A stretch of DNA of 64,000 bases from the IMG/VR virus record IMGVR_UViG_3300032116_000001, positions 62,001-126,000 of that record. One strand, 5' to 3'. Below, one piece after another: positions 22,757-62,722 of this stretch; position 1 is the first letter of the stretch; every line of letters begins with the position of its first letter. Position numbers and translations under genes: made by a program. The notes under the pieces are model-generated. The model was not told the DNA's origin. It ran no database searches and saw nothing but the letters and a program-made list of their open reading frames with translations.

Positions 22757-22757
22757 A

Positions 22758-42353: not shown

Positions 42354-44099
42354 TCAAATTGTTTTTACCGCAGCAATTGAAGATGCGACTCTAATTGATT
42401 GATCAATAAAGTCGGCTGATTTAAAGTCACCATTTTCCTCAAAAAACACTGCAAGGCGATTCATATCATCGAGAACTTTTGCAATGCGTATGCAAATATT
42501 TTCCGAGGAGCTAACAGTTTGCATACCTTCGTCTTTTTGTTTTGTGAAGTATGGATAAGACGCATTTTCTCGAACAACAAGGCTTTTGTCTGATTTTCCA
42601 GATTTCCAATTTTGAAGCTCAATGTCCATGATTTTTTTTCTTTCTTCTTCTGGGGCATTGTTGTGCAAAAATCCAAATGTGTTATCATCGCGCCTTAAAG
42701 ACATTAATGTTCCATTATTGTATCCTAAATTATTATAGGCGTTGTCACGTATTTTTTGTGCTTCCTCATCGCTGATTTTGTCCCAGGGCTTGTCTCCAAA
42801 TTGTTCTTTTTTTATTTGGTTGTACTGAAAGTGCCGCAACAATTCATCCACACCAAAAAGCACACTTCTCCATTCTTTCGTATCGAGTCGAGATGCCCTG
42901 GCAATAATTTGATCACGTGTTGTTGCTTTGATTCCAGCTTCATCAAGTTTGTTTTTAAGCGTTATTAAGAAATCTTGCTGAAGCATGTTAATATTAACAA
43001 GTTTCTTTGTGCCTGCTTCTTTATTGCTTCGGCCCGCAACATCTGCGTGCAGTTTAGCCTCAAGCATTGACTCGTACATTATCTCCATTATTTTTCTTGC
43101 AGTTTGGGGGTCTGTAATTTCATATGCGCGTCTGAAAATAATATGCAACGGTAAGCGACCGTTTTGCTCGACCTGATATTGCTTCAGCTTATAAATGGGC
43201 AAGAAAGCGTTTTCGGCTACCCATTGCCCTGATCCTTGAAAATATCTTGCTCGATTATTAGCCTTTGTAACAACTTCATCTATGTCAGCGGTGTCTCGGC
43301 TGATTAATTGGCCCTTTCTTCTGCGCATAAGGCTTGCTGGTACTGGACCCAAAGATTTTTGTCCAGATTGCTGGGCCAAATCTGGATTATTGGGTTTTTG
43401 TTTGCTTTCAATTTGATTCCTTAAATTAATATCTTCTTCCCATTGTTTGAGATTTTCTAATTCTTCAAATTGAGATCGATTCATATTGGGATTAGATTCA
43501 ATTTCTTTAATCTTGAACTGAATCGTTCTTAAAAGAGCCACATAATCCACATATTGATCTTGCGCCATATAGTCAATATGTGGGGGCATTTTGGTATTTT
43601 CATCTGAAACAAACTTTGGGTGCGGGTTGACTAGTTCGTCATAAGATAAATGATTGTCGAGCGCATCTTTCGGAGCTAAGTTTTTTTGTTTGTATTGAAA
43701 TACGGCTGATTTAGCTGATAGTTTAGCTCTGTTTAAAAGCCAGTTGTAAGGAGATGACACTCCTGATTCGTTGCGTATATCATAAGTTTCCAGGCTAGAC
43801 TCAATGCCTCTTTTCCACATATAATACATGACCTTTGATGACAAATCTTCGGCAGAATGTTTCTCTATTTCAGGATGCACCGTATTAATATATTTTAACG
43901 CCGTCTCTTCAAGAAGTTGCAAAAAACCTGGCAAATTCTTGATTTTTTGCAAAATTTCTCCTGACCGAGGGCTTTCTGTTTTGTAGCGAAAAACCAGATC
44001 ATTTAATGCTGACTTCAGGGATGATTCCTGGGCATTTTTGATAAATTTTAAAAAATTCACCGCATATTTTGGAAGCGCCTGGCGCATTGTATAATGCAT
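42354..44099 (-). CDS. Large protein with sigma region-2-like segment and C-terminal tag; apparent paralog of 60356..62722
   Basis: AEDLSSKVMYYMW...YNWLLNRAK; KPWDKISDEE block shared with the 60356 protein; C-terminal LAVFFEENGDFKSADFID. Confidence 0.55.
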   Translation of the reverse strand: MHYTMRQALPKYAVNFLKFIKNAQESSLKSALNDLVFRYKTESPRSGEILQKIKNLPGFLQLLEETALKYINTVHPEIEKHSAEDLSSKVMYYMWKRGIESSLETYDIRNESGVSSPYNWLLNRAKLSAKSAVFQYKQKNLAPKDALDNHLSYDELVNPHPKFVSDENTKMPPHIDYMAQDQYVDYVALLRTIQFKIKEIESNPNMNRSQFEELENLKQWEEDINLRNQIESKQKPNNPDLAQQSGQKSLGPVPASLMRRRKGQLISRDTADIDEVVTKANNRARYFQGSGQWVAENAFLPIYKLKQYQVEQNGRLPLHIIFRRAYEITDPQTARKIMEIMYESMLEAKLHADVAGRSNKEAGTKKLVNINMLQQDFLITLKNKLDEAGIKATTRDQIIARASRLDTKEWRSVLFGVDELLRHFQYNQIKKEQFGDKPWDKISDEEAQKIRDNAYNNLGYNNGTLMSLRRDDNTFGFLHNNAPEEERKKIMDIELQNWKSGKSDKSLVVRENASYPYFTKQKDEGMQTVSSSENICIRIAKVLDDMNRLAVFFEENGDFKSADFIDQSIRVASSIAAVKTI

Positions 44100-44213
44100 A
44101 TGTGTATATTTGCAATTTAAATTAATTAGCACCTTTTTGCAAATTTTGCTTTTGATCACAAGTGCATTTTTGGCATTTTTTCACTATAAAATCAATGGGA
44201 GAAAACAAAACAT

Positions 44214-44720
44214 ATGCCCAAAGACATTACTTATGTACAATCTCTGGAACTTTACGAGATTGCTTTGAAATTAAAAGAACGATATTACCTTCATCTAGGT
44301 CACGTAGACTTGGATATTATTTATTTTGCCGAAAAACTTGGAGACAAGCCTAAGAAAGGCAAGATTGCTGAATTAAGCGGAATTTCTAATCCATGGGTAA
44401 AAGCCTTGCTTGCGAAAAATCAAAACGACAATAAGCTTTACTGCATGAGTGTTTGGTCTGCTGAATGGCTTGAGGTCACGCCAGCCAAGAAAGAATGGAT
44501 GGTCTTTAAGATGCTGTGCTCTGTGCACCCTCAGAACGACGGAAAGCTCAACAAGCCAGACATTTCCGACTTTGGTTATATTCAAGAGTTCTTTATGAAC
44601 GCTGGTGTTGGTCCTTATTGGGAATCTCAAGATGATTTGCCCTCGCTTTTGGGAACTGACCCGCTGGCCATTCCCCCTCCGCCTGACGACACGGATGAGG
44701 GCAGCACACTCGGAGAATAA
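44214..44720 (+). CDS. Phage metallopeptidase-like fold, zinc motif degenerate
   Basis: Family-like pattern ...W....KK..VFKMLCSVH...KPDISDF, with HExxH not retained. Confidence 0.5.
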   Translation: MPKDITYVQSLELYEIALKLKERYYLHLGHVDLDIIYFAEKLGDKPKKGKIAELSGISNPWVKALLAKNQNDNKLYCMSVWSAEWLEVTPAKKEWMVFKMLCSVHPQNDGKLNKPDISDFGYIQEFFMNAGVGPYWESQDDLPSLLGTDPLAIPPPPDDTDEGSTLGE

Positions 44721-44770
44721 ATAAAATATCTGCCCGCCTCAAATAATGTAATTTTTGGGGCGGGATATCA

Positions 44771-45511
44771 ATGTATAAACTTATGTCAAATTCAGCATAT
44801 ACTCAGTCAATAACAGAGCTTTTTGCAAAATTATACAAACCAAGATCGGAAGTTGTTCCTTTTAACAGGAGTGACTTGGAGACGATATGCCAAAAATATA
44901 ATGTTAAAAACATAGGAGATGTTTTGTATAGTTTTCGCAGCCGTCAGCAATTACCAAGTAGCATTAGAAGAACTGCAAAAAGAGGATTTCACTGGGTTAT
45001 TGAATTTAAGGGCAAGGGGAAATACCAATTTTCTCAATGGCCTGTTGCTTATATTAAGCCACAAATACTTGAGCCAACACTAATAAAAGATTGCACGCCC
45101 AAAATGATTAGCCAGTGTCTTGCGGATGATGAACAAGGCATGCTAACAAGAATGCGACACAATAATATACTGAGAAATTTTCTTGATCTTGATATTTATC
45201 ATCTTCAAAGCCATCTTAGAACATTTGTTCCTGGCGTTGGGCAAGTTGAAATTGATGATGTTTATGTTGGTGTTGATCAGCAAAGTAAACAATTTATCAT
45301 TCCTATTCAGGCCAAGTCATCTCATGATTTAATATCTGCGACACAATGTTCACAAGATATATTGTATTGCGAGTATTTTCATCCAAATTACAAATGTCGC
45401 TCGGTTGCAATAAAATCTATAGGAAATGAAACCTTGGCAGTTTTTGAATTAAAAGCAAAAGCCCCTGGCCATATTTGCATTGTAAATGAGCGTCATTTTC
45501 AATTTATTTAA
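44771..45511 (+). CDS. Type II restriction-endonuclease-like protein (PD-(D/E)XK), no adjacent methyltransferase
   Basis: KNIGDVLYSFR, DEQ, LQSHLRT.VPGVGQVEIDDVYVG...PIQAK. Confidence 0.6.
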   Translation: MYKLMSNSAYTQSITELFAKLYKPRSEVVPFNRSDLETICQKYNVKNIGDVLYSFRSRQQLPSSIRRTAKRGFHWVIEFKGKGKYQFSQWPVAYIKPQILEPTLIKDCTPKMISQCLADDEQGMLTRMRHNNILRNFLDLDIYHLQSHLRTFVPGVGQVEIDDVYVGVDQQSKQFIIPIQAKSSHDLISATQCSQDILYCEYFHPNYKCRSVAIKSIGNETLAVFELKAKAPGHICIVNERHFQFI

Positions 45512-45577
45512 AACTTTTTTATTAAACAAAACGTATAAATAAATACGTTGTCTTTAATAAGGCAAGGAAGGAACGAA

Positions 45578-46123
45578 ATAAACAACAACAATAATAATCG
45601 CAAATCGCGGCGAGAGCCGCCTCCGAACATTAATGAGCGTCTTCTCCGATTTGGAGAAATCAGAGTCATTAATGCAGATGGTGATCAAATAGGTATAATG
45701 ACGTCAAGAAAGGCGCTAGACTTGGCCTTGGAAGATGGCCTTGACTTGATTTTAATTGCTGAGTCTGCAAAGCCTCCTGTATGCAAAATTGCCGATTATG
45801 GTAAGCATAAATACATTGAGGCGAAGCGCAAGAAAACAAGCAACAGTAAAAAACCTCAAGAAACCAAGAGTCTTAAAATTAGCCCGAGAATTTCTGATCA
45901 CGATTTAGGTATTACGGCTAAAAAAGCCTCTAACTTTTTGGAGCATGGAGATAAAGTTAGACTAATGTGTTTATTCAAGGCCCGTGAGCTTTCGCACCCA
46001 GCGCTTGGAAAAGAAAGACTGGCAAAGCTTATTGATTGTCTTTCCAGCTCTGCAATACCCGAGGGTGAGCCTTTGTTGGAAGGCAAAGTAATGGCCGTGG
46101 TTTTGCGGCCCAAAGATAATTAA
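45578..46123 (+). CDS. infC: Translation initiation factor IF-3
   Basis: INER...IRVI..DG.QIGIM...LDL..IA..AKPPVCKIADYGKHKY...GDKVR. Probable ATA start at 45578 behind AAGGAAGG; alternative TTG at 45548. Confidence 0.92.
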   Translation: MNNNNNNRKSRREPPPNINERLLRFGEIRVINADGDQIGIMTSRKALDLALEDGLDLILIAESAKPPVCKIADYGKHKYIEAKRKKTSNSKKPQETKSLKISPRISDHDLGITAKKASNFLEHGDKVRLMCLFKARELSHPALGKERLAKLIDCLSSSAIPEGEPLLEGKVMAVVLRPKDN

Positions 46124-46246: not shown

Positions 46247-47335
46247 ATGAGCCTTTATAATAAATACAGACCCTATCATTTTTCTGACGTGGCACAGGAG
46301 CATGTCTCTCGTGTGCTCAAGGCGCAAATTGCCACTGGAAACCACGTCAGTACTTATCTTTTTTCAGGTCCTCCAGGAACTGGTAAAACCACCCTTGCCA
46401 GAATTATGGCAATGGCTTTAATGTGTGAAAAAAGAATCGACGGCGAAAGCGAACCTGACCCAAGCAGCAAGTCTTCACAAATGATTCGAGAAGATCGCCA
46501 TCGCGATGTTATTGAGGTTAACTGTGCAACAAATGGCGGTGTTAATGAGATGCGAGAGCTAATTGCCGAAAAGATGCGCATTCAGCCATCAATGGGGAAT
46601 TATCGTGTGTTTATTTTGGACGAAGCACACATGCTTTCTACGGCTGCGCAAAACTCATTACTGAAAATCATGGAGGAACCGCCAAAGCATGTAGTTTTCT
46701 TTTTGTGCACAACTGATCCTCATAAAGTTTTGCCAGCAATACGCTCTCGCTGTCAGCATCATATGTTAAATCGCGTCTCTAACACAGATTGCAAGGAGAT
46801 TTTGCAAAAAGTTGTAAAAGAAGAATCGATGACCGCTGAAAATGCGGCCTTGGATGTTATCATTGATGCATCTCAGGGTAGCGTTCGGACTGCATTAGTC
46901 ATCCTAGAGCAAGTATCGCTAATCGGCGTGACAGAAGACAATGTCCGCGCTGTATTAGGACGTGGCCCAAAGGGGTTGGCAATTGATCTTTTAAAATCAA
47001 TTGGTAATTCAAACCATGGAGAAGCTTTTAGAATAATTAAATCTGCTCATGCTGAGGGTCGTGACTTAGGCGCACTTTTGGAGGACGCGAGTAGAATTTT
47101 AATGACTATGGCTGAATACAGGTTGCTCAAGGTTGACAAATCGGAACGAGACCCAGAGATTGCTGAAATGATTTCTGTTTTTCGAGGCCCTCAGATAGTG
47201 GAAATCACCAATCAACTTTTAGAAATCGCTAATAAGATACGGCAAAATGTGGCAGCAGATTTGGTAGTTCAATCAGGCTTGCTGCGGATTATTGATAGGT
47301 TTGCAAAGATTAAGGAAGCGCAAGCGGTAGTTTAA
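46247..47335 (+). CDS. dnaX: DNA polymerase III clamp loader subunit gamma/tau (short, gamma-like)
   Basis: LYNKYRP, GPPGTGKTT, DEAHML, LLKIMEEPP, IRSRC. Confidence 0.93.
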   Translation: MSLYNKYRPYHFSDVAQEHVSRVLKAQIATGNHVSTYLFSGPPGTGKTTLARIMAMALMCEKRIDGESEPDPSSKSSQMIREDRHRDVIEVNCATNGGVNEMRELIAEKMRIQPSMGNYRVFILDEAHMLSTAAQNSLLKIMEEPPKHVVFFLCTTDPHKVLPAIRSRCQHHMLNRVSNTDCKEILQKVVKEESMTAENAALDVIIDASQGSVRTALVILEQVSLIGVTEDNVRAVLGRGPKGLAIDLLKSIGNSNHGEAFRIIKSAHAEGRDLGALLEDASRILMTMAEYRLLKVDKSERDPEIAEMISVFRGPQIVEITNQLLEIANKIRQNVAADLVVQSGLLRIIDRFAKIKEAQAVV

Positions 47336-47409: not shown

Positions 47410-48102
47410 TTGGGACAAGACCTATATATATTACAACTAGTTAGAAGGGCCAAAACTGGAGATGAGCGAGCTTTTTCTAGGCTCCTGGATGAAATAGAGC
47501 CAGACCTTAAAAAGGTCGCTCATCAATATTTTATTCAAGGACAAGACAAAGAAGATGTTCTTCAAGAACTAAGAATTGCAGTCTATAAGGCCGTGGGTTC
47601 CTATGATGAATCCCAAAACACTACGTTTAAAAGCTTTTGCATCAATCTTGTGTGTAAAAGGCATATATCCACGGCAATACATTCTGCACTAAGACACAAA
47701 AACAAAACTCTCAACAATGCAGTATCTCTTGATGCTCCAGTGATAATGGGTGATGATGGAAATATGCAATCTCTATCCGAGTTCATTCCTGACAGAGACA
47801 ATCCTTTGGAAGAAGACCTTGGTGATCGAAATATATTAGACGATTTGATATCCAGAGAGGAGCTTGAGGACAACCGCAAGCTTCTTGCGCCAAGGCTTAC
47901 ATCATTAGAGGGCAGGATTTTTGAGCAATATGGCCACAGCTCTTCGTATAAGGATATTGCAGAGGCATTGGGAATAGAACCCAAATGTGTTGACAATGCT
48001 CTTATGAGGATACGCAAAAAAGCCAGTGAAGTTTTTGACCAAACAGACCCAGGCAGCAATGTCAAAGATAGCGGCCCCAAAAAAAGAAGAAAACGAATTT
48101 AA
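47410..48102 (+). CDS. sigH: RNA polymerase sigma factor, SigH (Spo0H)-like
   Basis: YFIQGQDKEDVLQE...FKSF...KR.I.TAI..A.R.K.K.LN..VSLD...SYKDIAE...KCVDNALMRIRKK; TTG start with SD GAGGAG. Confidence 0.85.
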   Translation: MGQDLYILQLVRRAKTGDERAFSRLLDEIEPDLKKVAHQYFIQGQDKEDVLQELRIAVYKAVGSYDESQNTTFKSFCINLVCKRHISTAIHSALRHKNKTLNNAVSLDAPVIMGDDGNMQSLSEFIPDRDNPLEEDLGDRNILDDLISREELEDNRKLLAPRLTSLEGRIFEQYGHSSSYKDIAEALGIEPKCVDNALMRIRKKASEVFDQTDPGSNVKDSGPKKRRKRI

Positions 48103-48194: not shown

Positions 48195-49361
48195 ATGAAA
48201 TTTACCCTTACACGATCTACTGCTTTAACAGTGTTAAAGCAAGCACTAAAAACTTGCAATACTAAGGCAAAGGGGCAGGCTGATTCTGAGTTCCTTTTTA
48301 AGCCAGATGACAATGCCTTGTTGGTTACATCACTTAATGAAACATCGGAGCAAAATATTGTTTTACAGTGCAGCGACCTAGAATTTGAACAGGGAGAGAG
48401 CTTCTCCGTGTCGGGGCAGGCTCTTGTAGAATTTCTGCAACAATTCCCCGAAGAAGAGGTAAAGTGTCTTTACAACCCTGATGACTCATCGTTTGTTATA
48501 GGAAGTAAGAAAACTAGATTTGCATTTCCTACTGGTTCGGGATCAGATTTTGTTCCCTTTAATTTTCAGTCTCATGGTAAGGCAATTGAGCTGCCCAGCA
48601 GCTCGTTAAGAGAGGTTTTGAAATCGACCGCCTTCGCTGCATCTCACGACTATACACAAGCTCCATTAACGGCGGTGCATTTAAAAATTGCCGATGATGA
48701 AATCGTTGCCGAGGCCTGCGACACATTGCGCATAAGCAGGCATGTCACGCAAGTAAGCAGCTTGTCGGACGAAGCCGAATTGCTTCTTCCTTATGAAACA
48801 GCAGAAAATTTAGTTTCTCTTATTGAAGACGTGGGCGACATTACCATACAGCCTGGCCAACGTCATGTAAGATTTGCATGGGGCGACACAACATTCACGT
48901 CAACTTTGGAAAACACCATTGGGAAACCATATCCTGAGCTTTCCAAATTTATGCAAGGCAAAGAAATTGGAAGAGTCAAAATCAGTAAGGGGAACCTTTC
49001 CACATCACTAAAGCTGGCAGGTTTAGTAGCAAAAGATTCCTATGTTAATGTTGTTATTAAGCCGCTAGATAAGGATGGTCTGGGCGGAGGGCTTGTTATA
49101 TCAGCCAATGAGCAAGCTGGCATGAGCCTGGATACATTAATTGTTCAAGAGCAATCTGGCGAAGCAGAGGTAAATGTGGCGCATAGATTTTTCTCTAAGG
49201 CTGTAGATTTTGTTAACAATCCCTGGGTGATTATTTCTTTCAGAGAATTAAAAGAAAACACCATCGCCTTGGTGTTGGTAGACGGTGGGTTTGAGCACCT
49301 GATATTCCCAGTCACCCCAAATGCAACCCCAGATGTTGAAGATGAAGAATCAGAAGATTAA
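48195..49361 (+). CDS. dnaN: DNA polymerase III beta sliding clamp
   Basis: 388 aa; TAFAAS, ACDTLRI, KPYPEL, LIFPV; between dnaX and the delta-like gene. Confidence 0.8.
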   Translation: MKFTLTRSTALTVLKQALKTCNTKAKGQADSEFLFKPDDNALLVTSLNETSEQNIVLQCSDLEFEQGESFSVSGQALVEFLQQFPEEEVKCLYNPDDSSFVIGSKKTRFAFPTGSGSDFVPFNFQSHGKAIELPSSSLREVLKSTAFAASHDYTQAPLTAVHLKIADDEIVAEACDTLRISRHVTQVSSLSDEAELLLPYETAENLVSLIEDVGDITIQPGQRHVRFAWGDTTFTSTLENTIGKPYPELSKFMQGKEIGRVKISKGNLSTSLKLAGLVAKDSYVNVVIKPLDKDGLGGGLVISANEQAGMSLDTLIVQEQSGEAEVNVAHRFFSKAVDFVNNPWVIISFRELKENTIALVLVDGGFEHLIFPVTPNATPDVEDEESED

Positions 49362-50469: not shown

Positions 50470-50529
50470 GTTCAAATCTTAGATTTGAAGAATTATATTG
50501 AGGAATTAATAAGTTTCGGAGGTAGTTTT

Positions 50530-51120
50530 GTGGAAGCCCATTATCAATATATTAATGATTTAGTAACAAAATCACAAAATGGGGACACAAATGCTTTGTC
50601 AGATATTGCAGAATTTTATAGCCCGCTCATATCTGCATCTATCCAAAGATGTATTCTTAGAGAACCCAGGCTTTTGAGATTCAAAGAAGATGTTGAAGCA
50701 GAAGTTTTTTTAATCCTTAAAAAGCTTGTAGAGAATTACGATCCCAATTTGTCTTATTTTTCTTATTATATATCCACTCGTTTAGATTATGCAATTATCA
50801 ATCAGTGTAGGCAAACAATCCTGGGCCTTAAATCTAATTCTCGATTCTGTGAGGAAGTTTCTTTTTCTGATATATCAGAAGATTTAGATATTGTCAACCA
50901 TGATGATCCTTTTGGTAAAATTCATGTTGCGCAGGCAATTCAAGGGGCGATTGATAAATTGAATCCTCGACAAAAAGAAGCAATAGAAGCTTACTTTTTT
51001 GACAACTTAACTCAGCAAGAAGCCGCGAAAAAACTTGGCATTACACAAGCTTCGTTTTGTAAAAGGCTTCAGCGAGGCCTGAACAGCATGAGAGAATTAT
51101 TATCCGAAGATTTTATTTAA
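50530..51120 (+). CDS. Sigma-70 family factor (regions 2 and 4)
   Basis: YSPLI, EDVEAE, YDPNLSYFSYYI, LNPRQKEAI...LTQQEAAKKLGITQ; GTG start with SD GGAGGT. Confidence 0.85.
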   Translation: MEAHYQYINDLVTKSQNGDTNALSDIAEFYSPLISASIQRCILREPRLLRFKEDVEAEVFLILKKLVENYDPNLSYFSYYISTRLDYAIINQCRQTILGLKSNSRFCEEVSFSDISEDLDIVNHDDPFGKIHVAQAIQGAIDKLNPRQKEAIEAYFFDNLTQQEAAKKLGITQASFCKRLQRGLNSMRELLSEDFI

Positions 51121-51297
51121 CAAAAGGAATATTTTTCACAATTTAATCCAACTATATTTCTATGCCGCATATTTTTATGGCAAATTTTGTCATAAAAATA
51201 TATTAACATATGTTTTAGCAGGATTTTGCTCAATCAATATGAAAATATATTATGCGGAGTATTTGAGGGACAATCCTTCGCCAAGGAGATTCAAGAC

Positions 51298-52023
51298 GTG
51301 TTTGCCGCCAAAGATGCTGATATCATCTACAACTGGAAAAATGAACTTCGCCAAACCAATAAAGGTGAAAAGACCGTAGCTGCACAAAGCGCATTAGATT
51401 TGCAAAGACGAGGCTTTAGCGCAGCGGAGGCCATAGAATTGCTAGCTGCCGACAAGTTTGGGCTCGATGTTGCCGAAAGCGCAGTTTATGAAATTTATGG
51501 CAAAGAGCAGCGGGAAGCTAGAAAAAACATTGTAAAAACCGCGATGGTCGTGCCAACATCTTATAATGACGTTGCTCCCATCATTGAGGAAACACTTTCG
51601 AGACTTTCTCCGAAAGAATTTGTCCATAAATTGGCTAGAAGCGAAATGCCAATTTTAAGAGTGTCTTCAAAAAACATCGAATCTTGGTACAGGCTCGCCA
51701 CGGCTGCTAAGGAATACGGCGGGCATGCTATGACCGTGTTGCATTCAGAACTTCGGCCCTGGGTTGAAGAAACTATGCTTAAATCAGTTCTTATCGCAGA
51801 AAAAGAAAACTCAAGTATTCAGAGGCTTTCTTCTGACAGAAAACAATTTAGAGTTGCCATGCAAAAAGAATCAGCAGATGTGGACTTGGACATGGGCGTT
51901 TCCACGGGAACAAGATTCCAGAAAGGCAATTTTTCTGACTTTGGCCTAGCTGATGAATTTATGATCCAGGCTGCTGATCATTCATCGCCTTATGAGCGCT
52001 TAAAACGCGCACTTAGCATGTAA
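51298..52023 (+). CDS. Hypothetical protein (late region)
   Basis: GTG start behind AAGGAG; AGGA-N17-GAAAAT promoter at 51220. Confidence 0.65.
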   Translation: MFAAKDADIIYNWKNELRQTNKGEKTVAAQSALDLQRRGFSAAEAIELLAADKFGLDVAESAVYEIYGKEQREARKNIVKTAMVVPTSYNDVAPIIEETLSRLSPKEFVHKLARSEMPILRVSSKNIESWYRLATAAKEYGGHAMTVLHSELRPWVEETMLKSVLIAEKENSSIQRLSSDRKQFRVAMQKESADVDLDMGVSTGTRFQKGNFSDFGLADEFMIQAADHSSPYERLKRALSM

Positions 52024-52896: not shown

Positions 52897-55800
52897 ATGA
52901 AAAAAGGCAGGCCGTCAAAGCCCGAATATTTAAAGCAAGATAAAAAAACATCTCTAATGCAGCAACTAGCGGCGCTAGAAGATAGTTTTAAAAATCAAGG
53001 ATATGAGGGCGAATATGATGATGAAATTATGCCCAGTGTTCGGGCCGAAGTGATGCCTCCGCCAACGCCAGAAAAAACTAATTATAATCCTGATCAAATC
53101 GTAGATATTGTTACATTTATGGAGCATCCTTATTTTTGTAACCTTAAGCCATATCCGTGGCAAAGGCTTATATTAAAGTGTTTTTATATGGGCCAAGAAG
53201 GCAATACAAATTTAGAAATTCAGGATGTTGACCAAGATGTTCGGGAATCTGGAACTTGTGATGGATGTGTTTGGAAATATGTCCGTAACGATGAAGAAAA
53301 AGTTTACAAAGGCAGAAAAGATGGGAAGCAATTAAGAAATATATTTTCTGTTGTTAACTCTCCGTGTTTAACATGTGAACGATTTGATGACACCTTGCGA
53401 GAAGATAGGTACGTTGCAGCAAGGCACGAGGCAACAAACCCAGACGATTCCAGAAAGATTGACAATCTTATTAAGAGGCCCATATCTGATAATTATGAGA
53501 CAGAATATGATCTTTTGCATGCATCTGAATTTGACCCATTGCTAAGAAAGCAAGTTTTAGACAAATGCACAAATCGTTATAAGTTTCAAGAATTGATTCT
53601 TGTTTTAGGCAGAAGATCGGGCAAGGCCTTGGCCTTAGATACTCCTGTGCTCACTACTAAAGGATGGAAGACTATGGGCACATTGCAAGTCGGCGATTAC
53701 GTGTTTGGCGACGATGGATTTCCCACACGCATCATTGCGGCCACAGAACCTATGGAAGGGCGAATATGCTACAGGATGAGATTCTCCAATGGAGACACAA
53801 TCGTGGCCGATGAACAACATCAGTGGCGTGTCGTAAGCAAGCGCGAGCGCAAAAATCAGCCACGCGCTCGGATTCCTCGCGAGCTGCGCCAAGAAATCAA
53901 AACAACCAAAGAAATAGCTCAAACGCTTTTACATGGACGTTCCCGCACAATAGTGGATTGCAAAACGGGGAAATCTCGCATTATGGGCGCAGAGAGGAAT
54001 TGGTCCGTGGAATTAGCTTCACCTTTGCAAATGCCAGAGGCCGATCTACCTATTGCTCCCTACCTAATGGGAGCTTGGTTAGGAGACGGCTGTTCAACAC
54101 ACGGTCATATAACTAGCAACACAATCGAAGTAATAGATCGCATTCGTGAAACAACTTCCTATAATCCATGGAAGCAAGCTTGCAATCCGTTTGGTTACTG
54201 CATCGGTAAGGACGCAAACGAAGTTTCTTTCAAGGAAAGGCTTCGAGATTTGGGGCTGCTTGGCAAGGGTCGAAAACACATACCTACCGCATATCTTCTT
54301 GCTTCAGAACATCAGCGATTAGAGTTGTTGCGCGGATTGGTGGATACAGATGGTCACGTTTGCGCAAGATCGGGCCGTATCGAGATAACAACTGTTTATG
54401 ACGATCTTGCACGAGGCATTCACTCGCTTGTGTGCTCACTTGGGCAGAAAGCCACCATTTTAACGGGTGATGCTACGCTTAATGGCAAGTTTGTTTCCAA
54501 AAAATACCGCATCTGTTTTACGCCTAGAAATGGATTATTGCCAGCCACACTGTCATACAAGCGGGATCGCGTTAGTCATGCTAAAAAGTCTGATGTCGGT
54601 CGTATATTCATTGAAAAGGTTGAAAAATTGGCGGAATCAGTGCCTGTCCGCTGCATTCAAGTAGATAATGCAAGTAATATGTTCCTGGCTGGCAAAAGTC
54701 TAGTGCCGACGCACAACAGCTTTCTTGTCTCTGTGATGGCTCTTTACGAGTTGTACCGACTGCTTGCAATGGGTCACCCCCAGGCTCGATACGGCTTGAT
54801 GGAGTTTGATGAAATAGTCTTGCTTAATGTGGCCCGAAACGAAGAGCAGGCCAAAAAAGCCATCTTTTCCAAAATCAAACAAACGGTTCTGGCTTCGCCA
54901 TTTTTCCAGCCCTATGTTGGAAAAGACACAGAGCTGGAAATGCGATTCTTTACCGATCATGACAAAAAAGAAAATGAACGTCGGGCCGAAAATGGAATTA
55001 ATTTATTTTCTGGTTCATTAGTACTTAGATGTGGCTCTTCTAATGCCTCTGGATTGGTGGGATTAACTTGTTGGTCAATCATCATGGACGAGGTTGCAGC
55101 CATGGCAGGAGATAATCCTGATTCTGGCCTAGACTATGCACTATATGATGATTTAAAGCCCTCGGGCGCTACCTTTGGTAAAGATTTCAAAATGATGATG
55201 CTATCCAACCCAAAGGGTCCGATAGGGTTGCTTTACGATCTGCATGAAAATCGCCAAGATGATCCGACAACACTTGTAATGCGGCTTGCAACCTGGTTGA
55301 CAAACCCCAGCATCGACCAAGAGTGGCTTGAAGAACAAAAGCGCAAAGACCCCACTGAGTTCCAGATGCAATTTGGTGCAGAATTTGGGGCTGCATCAAG
55401 TGATCCGATGTTCACAGTGGATCAAGTGAATGGCATGTGGGCTATGACCTCAACAACGCCACGGGCCGAACATGGCCAGCCGCTTATTGAATATTACGCT
55501 CACCTTGATCCAGCGAGAACAAGCGACTATTATGCATTAGTGGTCTCTCACGCTGAACAAATTTATCCAATTCAAATCGGGCCAGATAATAAGCCATTAA
55601 AGCGAGTTGTTATTGATCATATACATTTTTGGAATCCCCGCACAAAGAATCAGCCCGTCTCTGAAAAAGAAGTGGAAGATTATTTAATAGAATTGCATCA
55701 AAAATTTAAGTTTAAGCAAGTAAGTTTTGACCAATGGCATAGTCAATCATCAATCATTAGACTAAAGAGCATGGGCATTAATGCCGTTGAAAGACAATTT

Positions 55801-56121
55801 AATCAAGAATACAAAGGAAAAATTTATTCTGAATTAATGCAATTAATCAGAGAACAAAGAATAGATATTTATGGAATTTCTGGTGGCACCTATCAAGATG
55901 CCAAGGGCGTGGTTCAAGACCTTAACGAAATTGCTGAGGCTAAAATTCAATTTACATTTTTGCAAAAAGTTTGGAAAGGCAAAAGATTTGAGATCAAAGC
56001 ACTGTCTGGATACAAAGACGACATATGTGATGCTGTTGCGGCAGCGGCATATGAATGTTTGACGGCAAGGGTGCTAAGCAGTTTTCCAAAATCGAGAGTG
56101 GCCAGAACTGGCGCTAGATAA
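52897..56121 (+). CDS. terL: Terminase large subunit, intein-containing
   Basis: YPWQ, Walker A GRRSGK|S, IMDEVA, LSNP, QFGAEF, HLDPA, SFDQW, KDDICDAVA. Confidence 0.9.
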   Translation: MKKGRPSKPEYLKQDKKTSLMQQLAALEDSFKNQGYEGEYDDEIMPSVRAEVMPPPTPEKTNYNPDQIVDIVTFMEHPYFCNLKPYPWQRLILKCFYMGQEGNTNLEIQDVDQDVRESGTCDGCVWKYVRNDEEKVYKGRKDGKQLRNIFSVVNSPCLTCERFDDTLREDRYVAARHEATNPDDSRKIDNLIKRPISDNYETEYDLLHASEFDPLLRKQVLDKCTNRYKFQELILVLGRRSGKALALDTPVLTTKGWKTMGTLQVGDYVFGDDGFPTRIIAATEPMEGRICYRMRFSNGDTIVADEQHQWRVVSKRERKNQPRARIPRELRQEIKTTKEIAQTLLHGRSRTIVDCKTGKSRIMGAERNWSVELASPLQMPEADLPIAPYLMGAWLGDGCSTHGHITSNTIEVIDRIRETTSYNPWKQACNPFGYCIGKDANEVSFKERLRDLGLLGKGRKHIPTAYLLASEHQRLELLRGLVDTDGHVCARSGRIEITTVYDDLARGIHSLVCSLGQKATILTGDATLNGKFVSKKYRICFTPRNGLLPATLSYKRDRVSHAKKSDVGRIFIEKVEKLAESVPVRCIQVDNASNMFLAGKSLVPTHNSFLVSVMALYELYRLLAMGHPQARYGLMEFDEIVLLNVARNEEQAKKAIFSKIKQTVLASPFFQPYVGKDTELEMRFFTDHDKKENERRAENGINLFSGSLVLRCGSSNASGLVGLTCWSIIMDEVAAMAGDNPDSGLDYALYDDLKPSGATFGKDFKMMMLSNPKGPIGLLYDLHENRQDDPTTLVMRLATWLTNPSIDQEWLEEQKRKDPTEFQMQFGAEFGAASSDPMFTVDQVNGMWAMTSTTPRAEHGQPLIEYYAHLDPARTSDYYALVVSHAEQIYPIQIGPDNKPLKRVVIDHIHFWNPRTKNQPVSEKEVEDYLIELHQKFKFKQVSFDQWHSQSSIIRLKSMGINAVERQFNQEYKGKIYSELMQLIREQRIDIYGISGGTYQDAKGVVQDLNEIAEAKIQFTFLQKVWKGKRFEIKALSGYKDDICDAVAAAAYECLTARVLSSFPKSRVARTGAR
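53626..54717 (+). mobile_element. Class 3 intein (364 aa) with LAGLIDADG homing endonuclease, in the TerL P-loop
   Basis: Starts ALALDTPV (Ala1); block B ADEQHQW; LAGLIDADG motifs GAWLGDG and LRGLVDTDG; block F VRCIQV; ends PTHN|S. Confidence 0.92.
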
Positions 56122-56206: not shown

Positions 56207-57301
56207 ATGTCAACAAACAAGTCTAGTCAAGGCCCAATGGAACGCCAATCACAATATGGTGGGGTTGGCGGAGGGCAATCTCCTTTTGCGCCTGGGGGCT
56301 CGCCGATGGGCAGAGGCTACGGGTCTGGTGGTGGCTTAGATATAAATAAATACGTGGTGGACGAAAGTTTCGACGCGGTTCTTGAGCAAGTACACAATCC
56401 TGCGCCGATTGACCCCGAAAGAAATATTGAAAAAAGACTTGAAGAACAACATGTTTTTGCCGAGGAAAATGCAATACCTTATGATCTTAGTTTTGAAGAG
56501 CGACAAAGATTAAAAATTAGGAATGAAATTAGAAGAAGAGAACAATTTTACGAAGATGCGGCAAAAAGCATTGCCAAAAACTCCCCATCTTACATCCAAA
56601 ATAATTTCCAGCCTAGTGAATCTCATATTACACCCTTTAATGTCCTGTTGCAATCGAGACGAAAAAACAATGACGAATCATACGTAAGAGACCCAAGAGA
56701 GGATGATATCCCGCCCCAAATTAAACCAACAAGATATCATCCTGTTTTGTCCAGTAATGGCCATGATCGATTGGCTTATTTAATAAGCAGGCCAAATGAA
56801 ATTAATGACGAAGATTCAGATGAAGTAAACTGGGCCAACAAAGCGCGTGTGACATTTCCGCTTGGACTTGGGAGCACCCCCGTTTTAAATTTAGGTTCAG
56901 AACTTGATGAATATTTAGATCAAGTTTCAAAACAAAATTGGGGCGGGCAAAAAAGCACGTCAAACGAGCCGTCTGTTGGATTTGACTTTCATGAGCCAGA
57001 TGAATTCACATTATTGCACGAACCAGACACAAAAAACCTGCCATCAAGCATTGGTGAACTGGCTGAAGATGTAGTTAATGGCATGGGAAGACTTGATAAA
57101 GAAAATGATTATGGAATTGTTGACAGCCCATTTGTTACACTTGAGGCAAAGTTAGAAGCCACAAATCGCGCCGAGCCAGAGAGAAGCCCCAGCGACGTAT
57201 TTCCAGGCAATAAGTGGCAACTACACAAAGATGAGCCCGCAGGCATATTGGATAGCTATCAGCAAAAATTTGAGGGCCAGGGCTCTCCTTGGAAAATTTA
57301 A
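56207..57301 (+). CDS. Hypothetical late protein (Gly-rich N-terminus, low complexity)
   Basis: 364 aa; AGGA-N18-GAAT promoter and GGGAG SD upstream. Confidence 0.7.
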   Translation: MSTNKSSQGPMERQSQYGGVGGGQSPFAPGGSPMGRGYGSGGGLDINKYVVDESFDAVLEQVHNPAPIDPERNIEKRLEEQHVFAEENAIPYDLSFEERQRLKIRNEIRRREQFYEDAAKSIAKNSPSYIQNNFQPSESHITPFNVLLQSRRKNNDESYVRDPREDDIPPQIKPTRYHPVLSSNGHDRLAYLISRPNEINDEDSDEVNWANKARVTFPLGLGSTPVLNLGSELDEYLDQVSKQNWGGQKSTSNEPSVGFDFHEPDEFTLLHEPDTKNLPSSIGELAEDVVNGMGRLDKENDYGIVDSPFVTLEAKLEATNRAEPERSPSDVFPGNKWQLHKDEPAGILDSYQQKFEGQGSPWKI

Positions 57302-57323
57302 AAACGCCTGTATAAACATAATC

Positions 57324-58436
57324 ATGTACGATTATCTAATCGTCGGTGCGGGATTGTATGGAGCTGTTTTTGCTCGTGAAGCGACTGATCGTGGAAAACG
57401 AGTTTTAGTAATAGACAAGCGTAAGCATATTGGTGGGAATTGTCACACTGAAATTATAGACAGCATTCCTGTGCATCAATATGGACCTCATTGTTTCCAT
57501 ACTTCCCAGGATTATATCTGGAATTATGTTCGAAAATTTGCCGATTTTAATCATTTTAGTCTTAGAACACGCGCAAATTTTAAGGGCAAATTATATTCAC
57601 TTCCAATAAATCTGTCTACGATGCATCAGGTTTGGCCCGAAGTTGTAACCCCGAGTCAGGCTGCCGCTAAATTGGCGGCGGAAACCGCGCCGTACATCGG
57701 GATTAATCCATCAAATCTTGAAGAACATGCGTTAAGTCAGGTTGGGCCAACTTTATATGAAATGTTTATCAAGGGATACACTACTAAACAATGGGGCAGA
57801 GACCCAAGAGAGCTTCCCTCTTCGATTATAAAAAGACTTCCCGTCAGGCTGACAATGAATGATAGATACTTTCATGATTCTCATAGATATGAGGGAATTC
57901 CAATTGGGGGTTACACGGCTATGATTTCAAATATGTTTAAAGGCATAGATGTTAGACTTGGGGTGGATTACCTAATTAACAGAGAGGAATTAAAAAAAGT
58001 AAGCAAAAAGATTGTTTACACTGGGGCCATAGACGCTATGTATGATTTTTGCTATGGAAAACTAGAGTATAGATCATTGCAATTTGAACATGAAATGCTT
58101 GATGGGGATTTTCAAGGCAACGCTATTGTAAATTACACAGAAGATACTGTTCCCTATACCAGAATCGTTGAGCATAAGCACTTTGAGTTTTTAAATCTTC
58201 CACACACTATAATTACTAAAGAATTTCCATCGGCACTAAATCAAAGTTTGGAACCTTTTTATCCAGTAAATGACAGCGCAAATAACGCACTGTTTGACAA
58301 ATATCGTGAGCGTGCTGAGTTCGAAAAAAATCTCATACTTGGGGGGCGATTGGCAAATTATAGATATTATGATATGGATGCCACTGTCGCAAATGCTCTT
58401 TCTGCAATCAGAAAAGAATTTTGTTGCGCAGGATGA
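57324..58436 (+). CDS. glf: UDP-galactopyranose mutase
   Basis: VGAGLYG, HIGGN, YGPHCFHT, GYTTKQWG, YRSL, YTRIVEHKHF, GRLANYRYYDMD. Confidence 0.95.
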   Translation: MYDYLIVGAGLYGAVFAREATDRGKRVLVIDKRKHIGGNCHTEIIDSIPVHQYGPHCFHTSQDYIWNYVRKFADFNHFSLRTRANFKGKLYSLPINLSTMHQVWPEVVTPSQAAAKLAAETAPYIGINPSNLEEHALSQVGPTLYEMFIKGYTTKQWGRDPRELPSSIIKRLPVRLTMNDRYFHDSHRYEGIPIGGYTAMISNMFKGIDVRLGVDYLINREELKKVSKKIVYTGAIDAMYDFCYGKLEYRSLQFEHEMLDGDFQGNAIVNYTEDTVPYTRIVEHKHFEFLNLPHTIITKEFPSALNQSLEPFYPVNDSANNALFDKYRERAEFEKNLILGGRLANYRYYDMDATVANALSAIRKEFCCAG

Positions 58437-58926: not shown

Positions 58927-58956
58927 TGTTTTTCAAAAAACGCTAGTTGAGCTGAT

Positions 58957-58982: not shown

Positions 58983-59013
58983 GTTAACTATTAGTTAGTT
59001 TTCGGAGAAAAGC

Positions 59014-59538
59014 ATGCCCTATCCCATTAAACCCGTTCATAAACTTGATCTTCATGAAGAAATTTTTGATTCTCCCAGCATTGAGGCAGATTTAGCATCG
59101 ATATCTGCATTGCAAATGCAGTTTTTTGGTAATTCTGGGGTCCGAGAAGCCAAAGTAAAGTTATCTGACAGAATGATTGAAATGCTAAGGGCTATTGAAC
59201 AATCTCAGGATGAAATTGTTACCGCAGCCCAATCATTAACAACTTTGAATAAAACTGGTGATGCAATTTACAGAGTCCCAATGTCAATCACTGATCATGA
59301 TTTACTTGGGCTGAAAACAGCTGAACTGGTGCGGGGCCATGGCCGTGCCGTGACTCTTACAGAAAAGGGGCGCATTGCCTTGCGCGATCATTATCTAAAT
59401 CAGCCTGTTAATGAATTTAGAAAGGCTAGAACCAAGCCTAAATTTGATCTAAATGCTGCTCAAGCTATAACGGCGTCAAACGAAAGTGCCCGAGTTGCTA
59501 CTGCTTCTAAGTTTAGACGCAGCAATGATGTAGAATAA
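59014..59538 (+). CDS. Winged-helix-like protein
   Basis: LxGLKTAELV....VTLTEKGR wing motif; AGGA-N18-GAAA promoter. Confidence 0.55.
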   Translation: MPYPIKPVHKLDLHEEIFDSPSIEADLASISALQMQFFGNSGVREAKVKLSDRMIEMLRAIEQSQDEIVTAAQSLTTLNKTGDAIYRVPMSITDHDLLGLKTAELVRGHGRAVTLTEKGRIALRDHYLNQPVNEFRKARTKPKFDLNAAQAITASNESARVATASKFRRSNDVE

Positions 59539-59544
59539 ATAATT

Positions 59545-60333
59545 ATGGAACGCTTTAGTATCGCAAAAAACGCCGAGGCTTTGGCTGATAAGATGCACGA
59601 ACTTGCTGTATGGAGCAAGACGCATCCCAATTCGTCAAAGTTTAAACGCGGTATATTCAAGCTGCCGCCAGTATTTTCAAGCGACAAACATGGTGATCCG
59701 AGAAAAAATTTAATTGCCATGATAAAGACGCTAGCAGATTACGAAGAGTCAGATGCTGCGCCAAAGCTTGCTGAGCTTCCGTCTAGATATAATCAGTATG
59801 GCGGCGGACCAGAATTAAACGAAAAAGATTTGCGCAAAATTCACAACTGGCTTCAGCAAGTTGGTTTTGGTATTAGGGCAGCAATGTTGATTAATGAGAT
59901 GGAAAATCCAACAGAAAGTATGTCTCACTTAGATGTACCAGAAAGAGTTTTTCATATGTTATTTGCGAATCACCCAAGGCGAACATTTGTTACATATGCT
60001 TCGGACAACAAATATGAGCTTAGGCCATTAAGATATGCAGACTCTAAAGCAAAATTAAGATGGCTGAAAGAAGAATTTGCTCAACTAAATAATAAAAGAG
60101 TAATTACTGCAGGCGGATTTGGAGTTAGGCCAACTCAGCAAGAATGGGATACATTTGGGCTGAGGGGACAGACAAAAACTGCTTTAGCATCAGTTAATTC
60201 GCAAATAGATAATTTAGTAGGCCAGGCTAAAGCATTAGATTTTGAAGGAAAATTTACAGAAGCTGATATTTTAGATTTTAAATTAAATCAGTTGAGTAAA
60301 AATTTAGAAGGCTTTGATCAAGTCCAAATTTAA
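59545..60333 (+). CDS. Hypothetical protein with C-terminal tag (LVGQAKALDFEGKFTEADILD)
   Basis: ORF track; motif match. Confidence 0.7.
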   Translation: MERFSIAKNAEALADKMHELAVWSKTHPNSSKFKRGIFKLPPVFSSDKHGDPRKNLIAMIKTLADYEESDAAPKLAELPSRYNQYGGGPELNEKDLRKIHNWLQQVGFGIRAAMLINEMENPTESMSHLDVPERVFHMLFANHPRRTFVTYASDNKYELRPLRYADSKAKLRWLKEEFAQLNNKRVITAGGFGVRPTQQEWDTFGLRGQTKTALASVNSQIDNLVGQAKALDFEGKFTEADILDFKLNQLSKNLEGFDQVQI

Positions 60334-60355
60334 CATTCAAAAAGGAAAACAATCC

Positions 60356-62722
60356 ATGAAATTTCAACGTAATTATTGTCCCTCGATAAGTCAAATTCTC
60401 TCAGATGAAAGCCTAAAGCGATTATCGGCTATAACAGCATATTTAAATTTGTATTCTACAGGAGACAATACAAGTAATGCTAATTTTCGCCTAAGTTCAA
60501 GCTTGGAGTCAATGAAGAGAATTATAATCTCGTCTGAAATTGAAACATTACATCGCAAGACTGTTAAAGAGGATATTGATCGCATTAAGCATGCCTTGAA
60601 AAAAGCTTACTCTTTGGGTAAAGAATCATATGAAGCCTATGTTGACGCAAATAGTTCTGAAATTATAGCAGCGTTCTGGGCATGGATGATGACCCAAAAG
60701 CAATCTTTGTTTACAGGCATTAGTAATCAAAATAAATCTCTTTTAAGGAATTATCATGTCGGGCAAAGCGAGATCGATGACATGATCGAAGCGGCCATAC
60801 ACGAATTTATCACTCGGACAGAAGGAAAAACTAATCTTCTTGCGTCTGTTAAAAACTGGTCGCCTAGCGGAGGCGCAGATTTACATACATGGGTTCTTAA
60901 TGGTGCTAAAAACATGTTGGATATCACTGTCACCAAGCAAAGGCACCAAATCGTTAATCGCGGCAAATCTCTGGACGAAAATCTTAAAGGAAAAGACGGC
61001 GATGGAGACTCGCTTGGTGATATGATTGTTGATCCAAAATCCTCAACAGATGCAAAAGAATCTTATGATATTACAAACTATGACGAATTAGTTGAAGCTT
61101 TTGTGGAGGCCTTGCCTGAAAAAATTAGCGAACAGCCAGATTATATACGTGGGTTAATTGATAGAGGATTTAGGGCCATGAAGGTTCAGGCACAAAATGC
61201 AGAAGACCCCGAAAGTGAAAATAATTTTTACGAAATGTCCTTAAAGACTGCTAATGAGCTTTTTCAAAATGTTATGAATAGCTTTGAAGAGCTTAAGCGC
61301 TCTGTAAAAGTGATGATTTCAGACAAAACTGATGAAAATAGAGAAATTGCCATGAAGGCAAGAGAAGCTTATGACAGGCGTGTTTATTCACTGTTGAGAA
61401 ATTTGGTTGAGTCCTTTAATCCAAGTATAGCAAATAAAAAGAAAACTCAAAGAAATTTAAGCAATGTGGATGAGAATAACAAGGAAAACGAAAACAATTT
61501 CATTGACAATGAAGACAAGCAAGTTAACCAAGCCCCAAAAATTCGTTCCAGAGACTTGATTAAACCCGAAGATGAAGTCGGCAAAGAGACGGCGACTCCA
61601 GAAGAACTTATGGTAAGAAAAATGAAGCTGGACGAATTCAGAAAACAGCTTTTGCCATATTATTATCAAGTCGGTTCATTCCCAAAAACCAAATATAGAG
61701 ATGGTAAAATAACGCCATATGCCCTTAGTGAATATGGAATTGGATTAATTAGACCATACACACACTTTTTTTCAGGCATAGATTCGCCCGAAGACATAAA
61801 AGCTATGTTTGGCACTGACGAGGACAAAATAAATTCCCTGTCTCCCACAGCTTTATTTTCTCGGTTGCTAATTGAGAGTGGCTTAAAGGCTCATGAGGAC
61901 TACACCCTTGAAAACAAATTTAAAGTTCCAGGGTCAACAATGGGCAAAAACGAAGTTCAAAGATTTAGGGATTATTTCATTGACCAAATTGACACCAATC
62001 CAATGTTTACAAGACACAAAGATGTGCTTTTGCAAATGCTAGAAAGTTTCTTTTTAAACAAAAACAACAAACCATCTGATGAAAAAGTAAAAGAAATGAT
62101 CGAAAACCTTGATGCTCATACACGAATGGCCTCTTATGAGTGGGCTAGACATCAGTTAATGGGCGGTGATGGTGAACCGAAAGCATGGGCAGATTTAAGC
62201 CCTGATGAACTCAAGGCCATTGCTGTGAAGGCCTGGGAATCTTTATACGCTGATGGTTTTAGACTTTTTAGAATTCAAGAAATTAATGAACGTGGCGAGC
62301 CACATAGAAAAGGCCCTGTTATGCCATTGAGCAGATGGGTTAAGCCCGATGTCTTTTTGCCAATTATGGAAGAGGAAGTAAACAATATACAACGCATGCA
62401 GGCCAACAAAGCGGCAGTTAAAAAGGGTTATAGCCCCATTGCACAACGAAGCCGACTTGACCCCAGTATTAATCTTCAGAATATTGGTCAAAAAAGGCGT
62501 GAGATTTTGGACATTGCTAGAAATAATCAGGAAGTTCAGCAAAGCGATGTGCCTAAAACCTTTATCGAAGACAACTCTGTTGAGGATTCTAAAGATGCGT
62601 TGCAGTCACATGCAAGTGTGCTAGATAGAATGCTTCTCAAAATTAGTTCCATGGAGCAATCTGGTGATTACAAAAATGCAGACATTGAAATGTCAAGGCT
62701 AGAATCTATTTTAAGAGGATAA
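60356..62722 (+). CDS. Large protein with sigma region 2/3-like segment and C-terminal tag
   Basis: DDMIEAA...LHTWVLNGAKNMLD...KSLDENL...GDSLGDMIVD; C-terminal MEQSGDYKNAD. Confidence 0.6.
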   Translation: MKFQRNYCPSISQILSDESLKRLSAITAYLNLYSTGDNTSNANFRLSSSLESMKRIIISSEIETLHRKTVKEDIDRIKHALKKAYSLGKESYEAYVDANSSEIIAAFWAWMMTQKQSLFTGISNQNKSLLRNYHVGQSEIDDMIEAAIHEFITRTEGKTNLLASVKNWSPSGGADLHTWVLNGAKNMLDITVTKQRHQIVNRGKSLDENLKGKDGDGDSLGDMIVDPKSSTDAKESYDITNYDELVEAFVEALPEKISEQPDYIRGLIDRGFRAMKVQAQNAEDPESENNFYEMSLKTANELFQNVMNSFEELKRSVKVMISDKTDENREIAMKAREAYDRRVYSLLRNLVESFNPSIANKKKTQRNLSNVDENNKENENNFIDNEDKQVNQAPKIRSRDLIKPEDEVGKETATPEELMVRKMKLDEFRKQLLPYYYQVGSFPKTKYRDGKITPYALSEYGIGLIRPYTHFFSGIDSPEDIKAMFGTDEDKINSLSPTALFSRLLIESGLKAHEDYTLENKFKVPGSTMGKNEVQRFRDYFIDQIDTNPMFTRHKDVLLQMLESFFLNKNNKPSDEKVKEMIENLDAHTRMASYEWARHQLMGGDGEPKAWADLSPDELKAIAVKAWESLYADGFRLFRIQEINERGEPHRKGPVMPLSRWVKPDVFLPIMEEEVNNIQRMQANKAAVKKGYSPIAQRSRLDPSINLQNIGQKRREILDIARNNQEVQQSDVPKTFIEDNSVEDSKDALQSHASVLDRMLLKISSMEQSGDYKNADIEMSRLESILRG

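Follow-up and report, generated by a model that had tools for sequence, protein, structure and literature searches.

The 64,000-nucleotide stretch at positions 62,001 to 126,000 of IMG/VR record IMGVR_UViG_3300032116_000001 (hereafter the window) encodes two large proteins, A and B, that resemble sigma factors, the RNA polymerase subunits that choose promoters. A typical sigma factor is a compact protein with two to four domains; its region 2 (sigma-2) binds the beta-prime clamp helices and the -10 element, and its region-3.2 finger threads into the active-site cleft. From sequence profiles and a predicted structure, we concluded that residues ~100 to 240 of A, and the equivalent residues ~60 to 165 of B, are likely descendants of sigma regions 2 and 3.2. 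The explanation we favor, to which we give about an even chance, is that the two proteins, paralogues of each other, are strongly diverged members of the sigma-70 superfamily and serve as sigma-like specificity or adaptor subunits for the host RNA polymerase.

The two proteins and their families

The window belongs to the genome of an uncultured huge phage from fresh water, roughly 400 kb in size. Identical copies of its sequence were found on contigs of 378,848 and 420,993 bp, and over 15 freshwater metagenome runs, dated 2017 to 2025, contained it. Gene A (P0001) lies at 60356..62722 on the plus strand (60356-62719 plus the stop codon) and encodes a putative sigma-derived multidomain protein of 788 aa. 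Gene B (P0004), its paralogue, lies at 42354..44099 on the minus strand and encodes 581 aa when the ATG at 44099 is taken as the start and 577 aa when the ATG at 44087 is, as in database gene calls. The initial annotation of the window, made from the sequence alone, had described two giant sigma-like proteins about three times the size of normal phage sigma factors. The open reading frames (ORFs) were as described, and the proteins are 3.4 (A) and 2.5 (B) times as large as the phage's own sigma factors (230 and 211 aa). The sigma-2 and finger resemblance was recovered for A by profile search, hhalign and structure, and for B via homology to A.

Three relatives of A were found at about 41 to 46% identity (P0002, P0003, and P0007), and an exhaustive profile search of 1.8 billion representative proteins added eight more distant full-length members (674 to 850 aa, 16 to 22% identity). 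B has two relatives at about 55% identity, and the searches found no further members beyond these three sequences. On the contigs of related phages, the two proteins were conserved with 43 to 56% identity. Judged by this sequence conservation, A and B are real genes, conserved across related phages, and a widely distributed lineage of huge freshwater phages has the A family among its core genes. No homologue of either was detected in isolated phages by megablast or tblastn. Single-sequence searches of Pfam and PHROGs with A and B returned no match, and no Pfam family was found among the 12 full-length A-family members. One metatranscriptome yielded a 239-nt contig inside A only, which is uninformative on expression.

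Sigma region 2 and the region-3.2 finger

We searched all PDB sequences with a profile of the N-terminal domains of A and B (A4). The search gave 24 matches at E<=10, 16 of them to sigma-70-family proteins, and the best match was RpoD (E 0.0029). Two colinear segments aligned: EGKTNLLASVKNWSPSGGADLHTW (EGKtNllaSl..wDP..G....TW) to region 2.2/2.3, and SLDENLKGKDGDGDSLGDMIVD (SLD...G..D..LGDmI.D) to region 3.2, the sigma finger. The first segment belongs to a helical domain at residues 100-203 of A (60653..60964, plus strand) that resembles sigma region 2 (2.1-2.4) and has the family consensus EGK.N...SL...DP..G....TW. The second lies in an acidic disordered linker at residues 204-240 (60965..61075, plus strand; predicted local distance difference test score [pLDDT] <50), whose motif KSLDENLKGKDGDGDSLGDMIVDP, of the pattern SLD..G..D..LGD.I.D, pairs with region 3.2 of SigA/RpoD. 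The corresponding part of B, residues 25-151 (43647..44027, minus strand), comprises a sigma-2-like domain and a linker (AEDLSSKVMYYMW...YD....G.SSPYNWLLNRAK...ALDNHLSYDELV) in which the finger motif is degenerate.

The phage's own Pfam-positive sigma factor (47410-48102) provided a second comparison. Aligned with hhalign, it matched the A4 profile over 112 columns (probability 78%, E 1.7e-5) in the same order, region 2 followed by an SLD...D..L..FI.D linker. Region 3.0/3.1 is missing, a trait shared with extracytoplasmic function (ECF) sigma factors and with the phage sigma factor itself.

Structure prediction pointed to the same residues. The full-length AlphaFold model of A (pLDDT 71.7) was mostly helical, with three long disordered linkers. 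A sigma-2 fold in A, as the initial annotation had predicted, was borne out by the model: sigma-2 domains made up 17 of its 20 top structural matches among 48,161 chains, with 126 residues aligned, and the matches included T4 gp55, Mycobacterium tuberculosis sigma-H, SigR, SigE, and RpoE. A shape search of the ESM Atlas with the full-length model retrieved four sigma-factor clusters, with template-modeling scores by target of 0.45 to 0.48 for three and 0.38 for one, and these alignments reached A residues 323-354. In a language-model feature search, both proteins adjoined sigma-70 clusters (scores 0.94 for A and 0.90 for B), and those nearest to B (0.90) were sigma-70 region-2 clusters.

Other searches gave lesser signals. 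When N-domain fragments were scanned singly, Sigma70_r2, Sigma70_r3, and Spc7 were jointly the commonest Pfam families, with two members each; no fragment rose above the Pfam gathering threshold for Sigma70_r2, the best reaching E 0.027. A Foldseek search of AFDB Swiss-Prot with the A N-domain returned syntaxin-like helical noise only.

The finger motif was the most conserved segment among the distant members of the A family, with 28 to 33% identity compared to 11 to 18% in the flanking helical parts. This conservation suggests that the finger still contacts something as conserved as the polymerase cleft. A convergent or chance resemblance, in which A and B would be helical proteins of unrelated function, appears very improbable, as five independent approaches converged on the same family and the same residues, and the matches were colinear and covered two separate sigma signature motifs.

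Remaining domains and the paralogy of A and B

The order of conserved elements in the A alignment is MKFxR, an R-T-A-S-type motif, F....EGK.N...SL...DP..G....TW...G, SLD...G..D...GD.I.DP, variable helices, the C-terminal domain, and the C-terminal tag described below. The protein begins with a conserved N-terminal peptide at residues 1-46 (60356..60493, plus strand; alignment A3), in which MKFxR is near-invariant (F3 in 11 and R5 in 9 of the 12 members). Among the distant members this peptide showed 24 to 25% identity, compared to 11 to 18% in the flanking helical regions. The R-T-A-S-type motif lies at about residues 45-48, in a low-confidence flexible loop of the model; the relatives of B carry a similar motif, FIRTAQSS. 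These N-terminal motifs may form a processing site, a targeting peptide or a polymerase contact. The gene call for P0014 misses the conserved MKFxR start.

Following the finger, residues 242-380 of A (61079..61495, plus strand) form a poorly conserved bundle of long helices in place of region 4. The initial annotation had noted that neither protein shows a clear region-4 helix-turn-helix (HTH), and indeed none was detected in A or B with Pfam Sigma70_r4, which was also applied to the 12 full-length members. The hhalign comparison of A with the phage sigma factor gave no confident signal beyond the linker, and the structural matches of residues 242-380 were generic helical bundles only.

Residues 415-690 (61598..62425, plus strand) form a well-conserved alpha/beta domain common to A and B (alignments A3 and A7), with the motifs LLPYxY, RxAAYExAR, KPWxxLSDEEL..IA..AW..LY..GFR, and IMxxE. 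A sequence profile of this domain found no match in the PDB. Foldseek searches of the PDB, VIA wide, BFVD, and AFDB clusters with the whole A model returned generic helical bundles, tape-measure-like proteins and coiled coils only. The invariant residues R636 and E674 prompted an ADP-ribosyltransferase reading of the domain, which was rejected because there is only one invariant Glu, located in a helix, and the STS motif is missing.

The relationship between A and B, which the initial annotation had proposed from sequence blocks common to both, was marginal by BLASTP (best E 0.025) and clear in profile-profile comparisons. The C-terminal halves aligned over A565-778 and B403-570 with an hhalign probability of 97.5% and an E value of 7e-12. 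The aligned part of B (42390..42893, minus strand) comprises the C-terminal domain and tag, and the alignment takes in both the KAWADLSPDELK/KPWDKISDEEAQ block pointed out in that annotation and the tag. The N-terminal domains aligned over A71-210 and B25-151 (probability 86.5%, E 4.6e-6). As both halves align by profile-profile comparison, A and B are distant paralogues along their whole length.

A C-terminal hairpin shared with a neighboring protein

Both proteins end, as had been noted initially, in a common tag of ~40 aa (h..hA..LD..GdY..AD..h...h), which occupies residues 746-788 of A (62591..62719, plus strand) and residues 537-581 of B (42357..42491, minus strand). In the A model, helices 743-769 and 772-787 form a two-helix hairpin. 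The best PDB matches of the tag profile were a consensus tetratricopeptide repeat (TPR; E 8e-4), PPR10, and MamA, so that we describe the tag as a TPR-like hairpin. It occurs as a single copy at the extreme C terminus of each protein, with no tandem array of >=3 repeats. All relatives of A and B keep it, except P0016, where it was not evident.

All ORFs in the window and in ten related loci were scanned for the tag, with a regular expression and then with a hidden Markov model from all family members. The tag was restricted to the extreme C termini of three families: A, B, and a 262-aa protein whose gene (59545..60333, plus strand) directly precedes A. In this third protein the tag occupies residues 217-255 (nt 60193-60309). 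It was absent from DnaE and from the terminase-portal proteins other than A and the 262-aa protein, which argues, over the ~90 kb inspected, against a general clamp-binding tail or a widely used capsid-targeting signal. A sliding-clamp-binding motif is likewise unlikely, since the tag is not present in DnaE (Pol III alpha), is TPR-like, and differs from known clamp-binding peptides.

Aligned with hhalign, the 262-aa protein and A shared the tag alone (37 residues, E 6.8e-5), and the 262-aa protein had no match in Pfam, PHROGs or the PDB. Its gene adjoins the 5' end of A in every relative (L001, L008, L012, L013, and L014), including those of ~20% identity, with a spacing of 0 to 26 nt or an overlap. 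A lone TPR-like unit is unlikely to be stable and probably packs against another such unit or a common receptor. The 262-aa protein is a probable physical partner of A.

Genomic location and expression

In every relative, even at identities of about 20%, the A gene is located in the interval from the large terminase to the portal. The conserved string consists of an ECF-like sigma factor, two genes, TerL, one gene, (a glycosyltransferase), UDP-galactopyranose mutase, three small genes including the tagged one, A, DUF192, seven genes, and the portal. B, in contrast, is found amid replication and nucleotide-metabolism genes, between dUTPase and a metallopeptidase, and is the sole long minus-strand gene in a forward block of ~48 kb (15634-63222). 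It is convergent with the dUTPase gene and divergent from the metallopeptidase gene (flanking stretches 42175-42353 and 44100-44213). The inverted arrangement was also observed in the relative L004, indicating separate regulation, and A and B are very probably under different expression controls.

The initial annotation had further assigned both genes an AGG-N19 promoter variant (60309 for A and 44134 for B). This claim did not hold. The AGG at 60309 lies within the codons for a conserved E-G-F of the upstream 262-aa protein (...LEGFDQVQ end), and the DNA conservation there is due to coding. Inspection by eye of the relatives revealed no conserved non-coding motif upstream of A or B and none common to both, and scans for sigma-70-type promoter and terminator consensus sequences gave background or chance levels. 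Most likely, A rides on the transcript of the preceding genes.

The location of A is the starting point for a different account of the proteins, close to the proposal made initially, which we regard as unlikely. A, perhaps together with B and the 262-aa protein, would be made late, packed in the capsid and injected, redirecting the host RNA polymerase to phage early promoters at once. The C-terminal hairpin and/or the N-terminal peptide would then be a targeting signal, and the cargo would substitute for a virion RNA polymerase of the N4 or phiKZ type. Such delivery would suit a core gene kept between large terminase and portal in all relatives to about 20% identity and probably co-transcribed with the tagged 262-aa gene 0 to 26 nt away. 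The near-invariant MKFxR and the conserved flexible-loop motif, a possible processing site, as well as the three long disordered linkers and mostly helical build, a trait of many ejected proteins, would also fit, and it is not obvious what use a sigma-like factor produced only late would have within that cycle. However, ordinary sigma genes also adjoin the terminase in this lineage and in phage G, which makes the position of A weak evidence for delivery, and the terminase-portal interval holds non-structural genes too (sugar enzymes and DUF192). In addition, B is located in the replication module in its own orientation, no homologue exists in any isolated phage, and the claimed late-promoter variant is unsupported. 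The tag, found on three families only, looks like a docking repeat rather than a general packaging signal.

The same location could also reflect a role in morphogenesis or packaging, with a borrowed sigma-2 fold and no promoter function. The protein might, for example, link the terminase, the portal or the capsid interior to DNA or RNA polymerase, and the tag would serve for assembly with the 262-aa protein. The conserved place in the packaging/head module and the uncharacterized nature of all the neighbors are compatible with this role, and T4 gp55 has reportedly been seen by the Black laboratory to interact with the terminase gp17. We consider it improbable, because the conservation of the finger would be hard to explain without a polymerase cleft and because B lies outside the morphogenesis module.

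Proposed role in host transcription

We return to the favored explanation, that A and B are sigma-like subunits for the host RNA polymerase. The proteins would have kept sigma-2 and the acidic finger, with region 4 replaced by a helical bundle, a new alpha/beta domain of ~270 aa, and the C-terminal TPR-like hairpin. They may dock on the host core enzyme and displace the host sigma factor, with the sigma-2/finger module binding the beta-prime clamp helices and the cleft, and within the infected cell they would function as subunits that set promoter specificity or serve as adaptors. The missing region-4 anchor may be supplied by the C-terminal domain together with docking of the hairpin to a partner, for which the 262-aa protein is the best candidate. 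The resulting sigma system, split or extended, would follow a logic similar to that of T4 gp55 plus gp33 or of AR9 gp226. As B forms its own transcription unit amid replication genes and A belongs to the terminase-portal operon, the two may act at different times. The polymerase binding, promoter-directed activity, hairpin pairing and timing of A and B are what we infer from the sequence.

The gene content of the window is consistent with use of the host polymerase. No phage RNA polymerase (beta/beta-prime-like) gene was found among the ORFs scanned in the 64-kb window and its flanks, and the window carries two ordinary sigma factors. The first (47410-48102) has regions 2 and 4, with region 2 followed by an SLD...FI.D linker as in A; the second (50485-51120) is ECF-like, and in every relative its gene is found two genes upstream of the terminase.

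Several observations weigh against this explanation. No cognate promoter motif for A or B was found by eye or by consensus scan, no DNA-binding domain was identified in either protein, and the whole-model searches gave no fold match for the C-terminal domain. The sigma-likeness of B rests mainly on its homology to A, and the hhalign comparison of B alone with the phage sigma factor was not significant. Furthermore, conservation does not extend to the tryptophan pair of region 2.3 or to the residues of region 2.4, so that -10 recognition is not evident.

These losses would also fit a sigma mimic that acts as an inhibitor. In that case the sigma-2/finger module would occupy the host core without initiation, shutting off host transcription or reserving the polymerase, with the large C-terminal part as a tether or steric obstacle. 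The core-binding elements (region 2.2 and the finger) are conserved while the DNA-reading ones (the 2.3 tryptophans, 2.4, and region 4) are lost, and for promoter recognition two ordinary sigma factors are already available to the phage. We nevertheless judge inhibition rather improbable, given that 580 to 790 aa is large for such a role and that a conserved 270-aa C-terminal domain and a partner protein suggest a constructive one.

Other genes in the window and related loci

The window encodes a bacterial-type replisome (22707-49361), which includes DnaB (22707-24326), Pol III alpha/DnaE (26298-29642), RecA (31571-32869), RecJ (34307-36106), a clamp loader (46247-47335), and the beta clamp (48195-49361). 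Ribonucleotide reductase and dUTPase are also encoded. A gene for the translation initiation factor IF3 with both domains (45548-46123) is conserved in L004; its nearest genome matches are ~40% identical and give no host signal. Near RecJ, L004 carries a TnpB/IS605 OrfB (Cas12f-like) insertion (L004:18446-19645) that is absent at the equivalent place in the window. A 265-aa protein (51226-52023) gave a weak, sub-threshold match to Cas6 (E 0.002, 18.5 bits vs a cutoff of 26.7).

The large terminase (52897-56121, 1074 aa) is interrupted by a LAGLIDADG-type intein. The terminases of the relatives L001, L008, and L013 are intein-less and 702 to 714 aa long, and L012 has another long version. The portal (Portal_Mu; L009:18124-20586), about 5.7 kb past the end of the window, contains endonuclease-type domains (DUF559/MTES_1575) that are probably a further mobile insertion. 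Among isolates, the nearest relative of the portal is gp14 of Bacillus phage G (29.6% identity). Phage G gp7 (930 aa), which occupies the equivalent place upstream of the portal in this nearest isolate, was considered as a counterpart of A and rejected: it is not a homologue, being repeat-rich and without the tag or the sigma motif. Sugar-nucleotide enzymes are represented by UDP-glucose dehydrogenase (549-1859, minus strand) and UDP-galactopyranose mutase (57231-58436, plus strand), the latter adjoined by a glycosyltransferase in a relative (L013:5937-6725). They suggest glycan synthesis, perhaps for glycosylation of the virion or of DNA.

Comparison with known phage transcription factors

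In the T4 late system, gp55 is the late sigma factor, gp33 the co-activator, and gp45 the sliding clamp. T4 gp55 consists of a sigma-2 domain only, without region 4, and attaches to the beta-prime clamp helices. It acts together with gp33, and each of the two proteins has a C-terminal motif for a docking partner common to both (PMC7892883, PMC2988020). Here, too, a sigma-2 protein and a small neighbor, the 262-aa protein, share a C-terminal module. However, gp55 is a protein of 185 aa, compared to 788 aa for A and 581 aa for B with their large extra domain. A has a finger of the primary-sigma 3.2 type where gp55 has a helix-loop-helix, and the shared module of the present proteins is a TPR-like hairpin of 40 aa as opposed to a short clamp-binding peptide. 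No sequence-level similarity between T4 gp55 and A or B was detected.

In AR9 gp226, unique domains enclose a sigma-2-like domain, a finger and one sigma-4-like helix (PMC9209446). A shares with gp226 and phiKZ gp68 the same domain order (a unique N-terminal part, sigma-2, finger, helices, and a unique C-terminal part), a likeness of domain order only. In contrast, gp226 and gp68 serve phage-encoded split beta/beta-prime polymerases of the jumbo-phage non-virion type, and they have no detectable sequence similarity to sigma factors, whereas A is profile-similar to RpoD/SigA and to the phage sigma factor. ECF-type (group 3/4) sigma factors and the phage's small sigma factors share with A the sigma-2 fold, and in the phage sigma factor at 47410, as in A, region 2.4 is followed almost directly by the SLD...D..L..FI.D linker. 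A differs from them in that it lacks the region-4 HTH, is three times the size, has the added C-terminal domain and tag, and falls below Pfam thresholds.

Virion-delivered transcription proteins are represented by the N4 virion RNA polymerase, the virion RNA polymerases of phiKZ and AR9, and T4 Alt (PMC4496689, PMC7598289). If A were indeed delivered with the virion, it would resemble them as a late-made, packaged protein that takes over transcription at injection, although those proteins are polymerases or an ADP-ribosyltransferase rather than sigma-like subunits. It would then represent a new mode of host takeover, a third route beside virion RNA polymerases and injected modifying enzymes, in which the host RNA polymerase is captured for phage early promoters before any phage gene expression. 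Our literature search found no report of a virion-packaged sigma factor, nor of sigma-derived proteins of the size and architecture of A and B.

The known phage derivatives of sigma factors fall into two groups: minimal ones, such as T4 gp55, and others, such as AR9 gp226 and phiKZ gp68, in which divergence has gone so far that it took structures to recognize them. The A/B family, which is closer in sequence to true sigma factors than gp226 and gp68 and much larger than gp55, represents a different state, in which a sigma-recognizable module is joined to some 500 residues of novel sequence and to an orphan docking hairpin of the TPR-like type. It lends itself to the study of how a promoter-specificity subunit is rebuilt and may show how very large phages without a polymerase of their own control the host enzyme.

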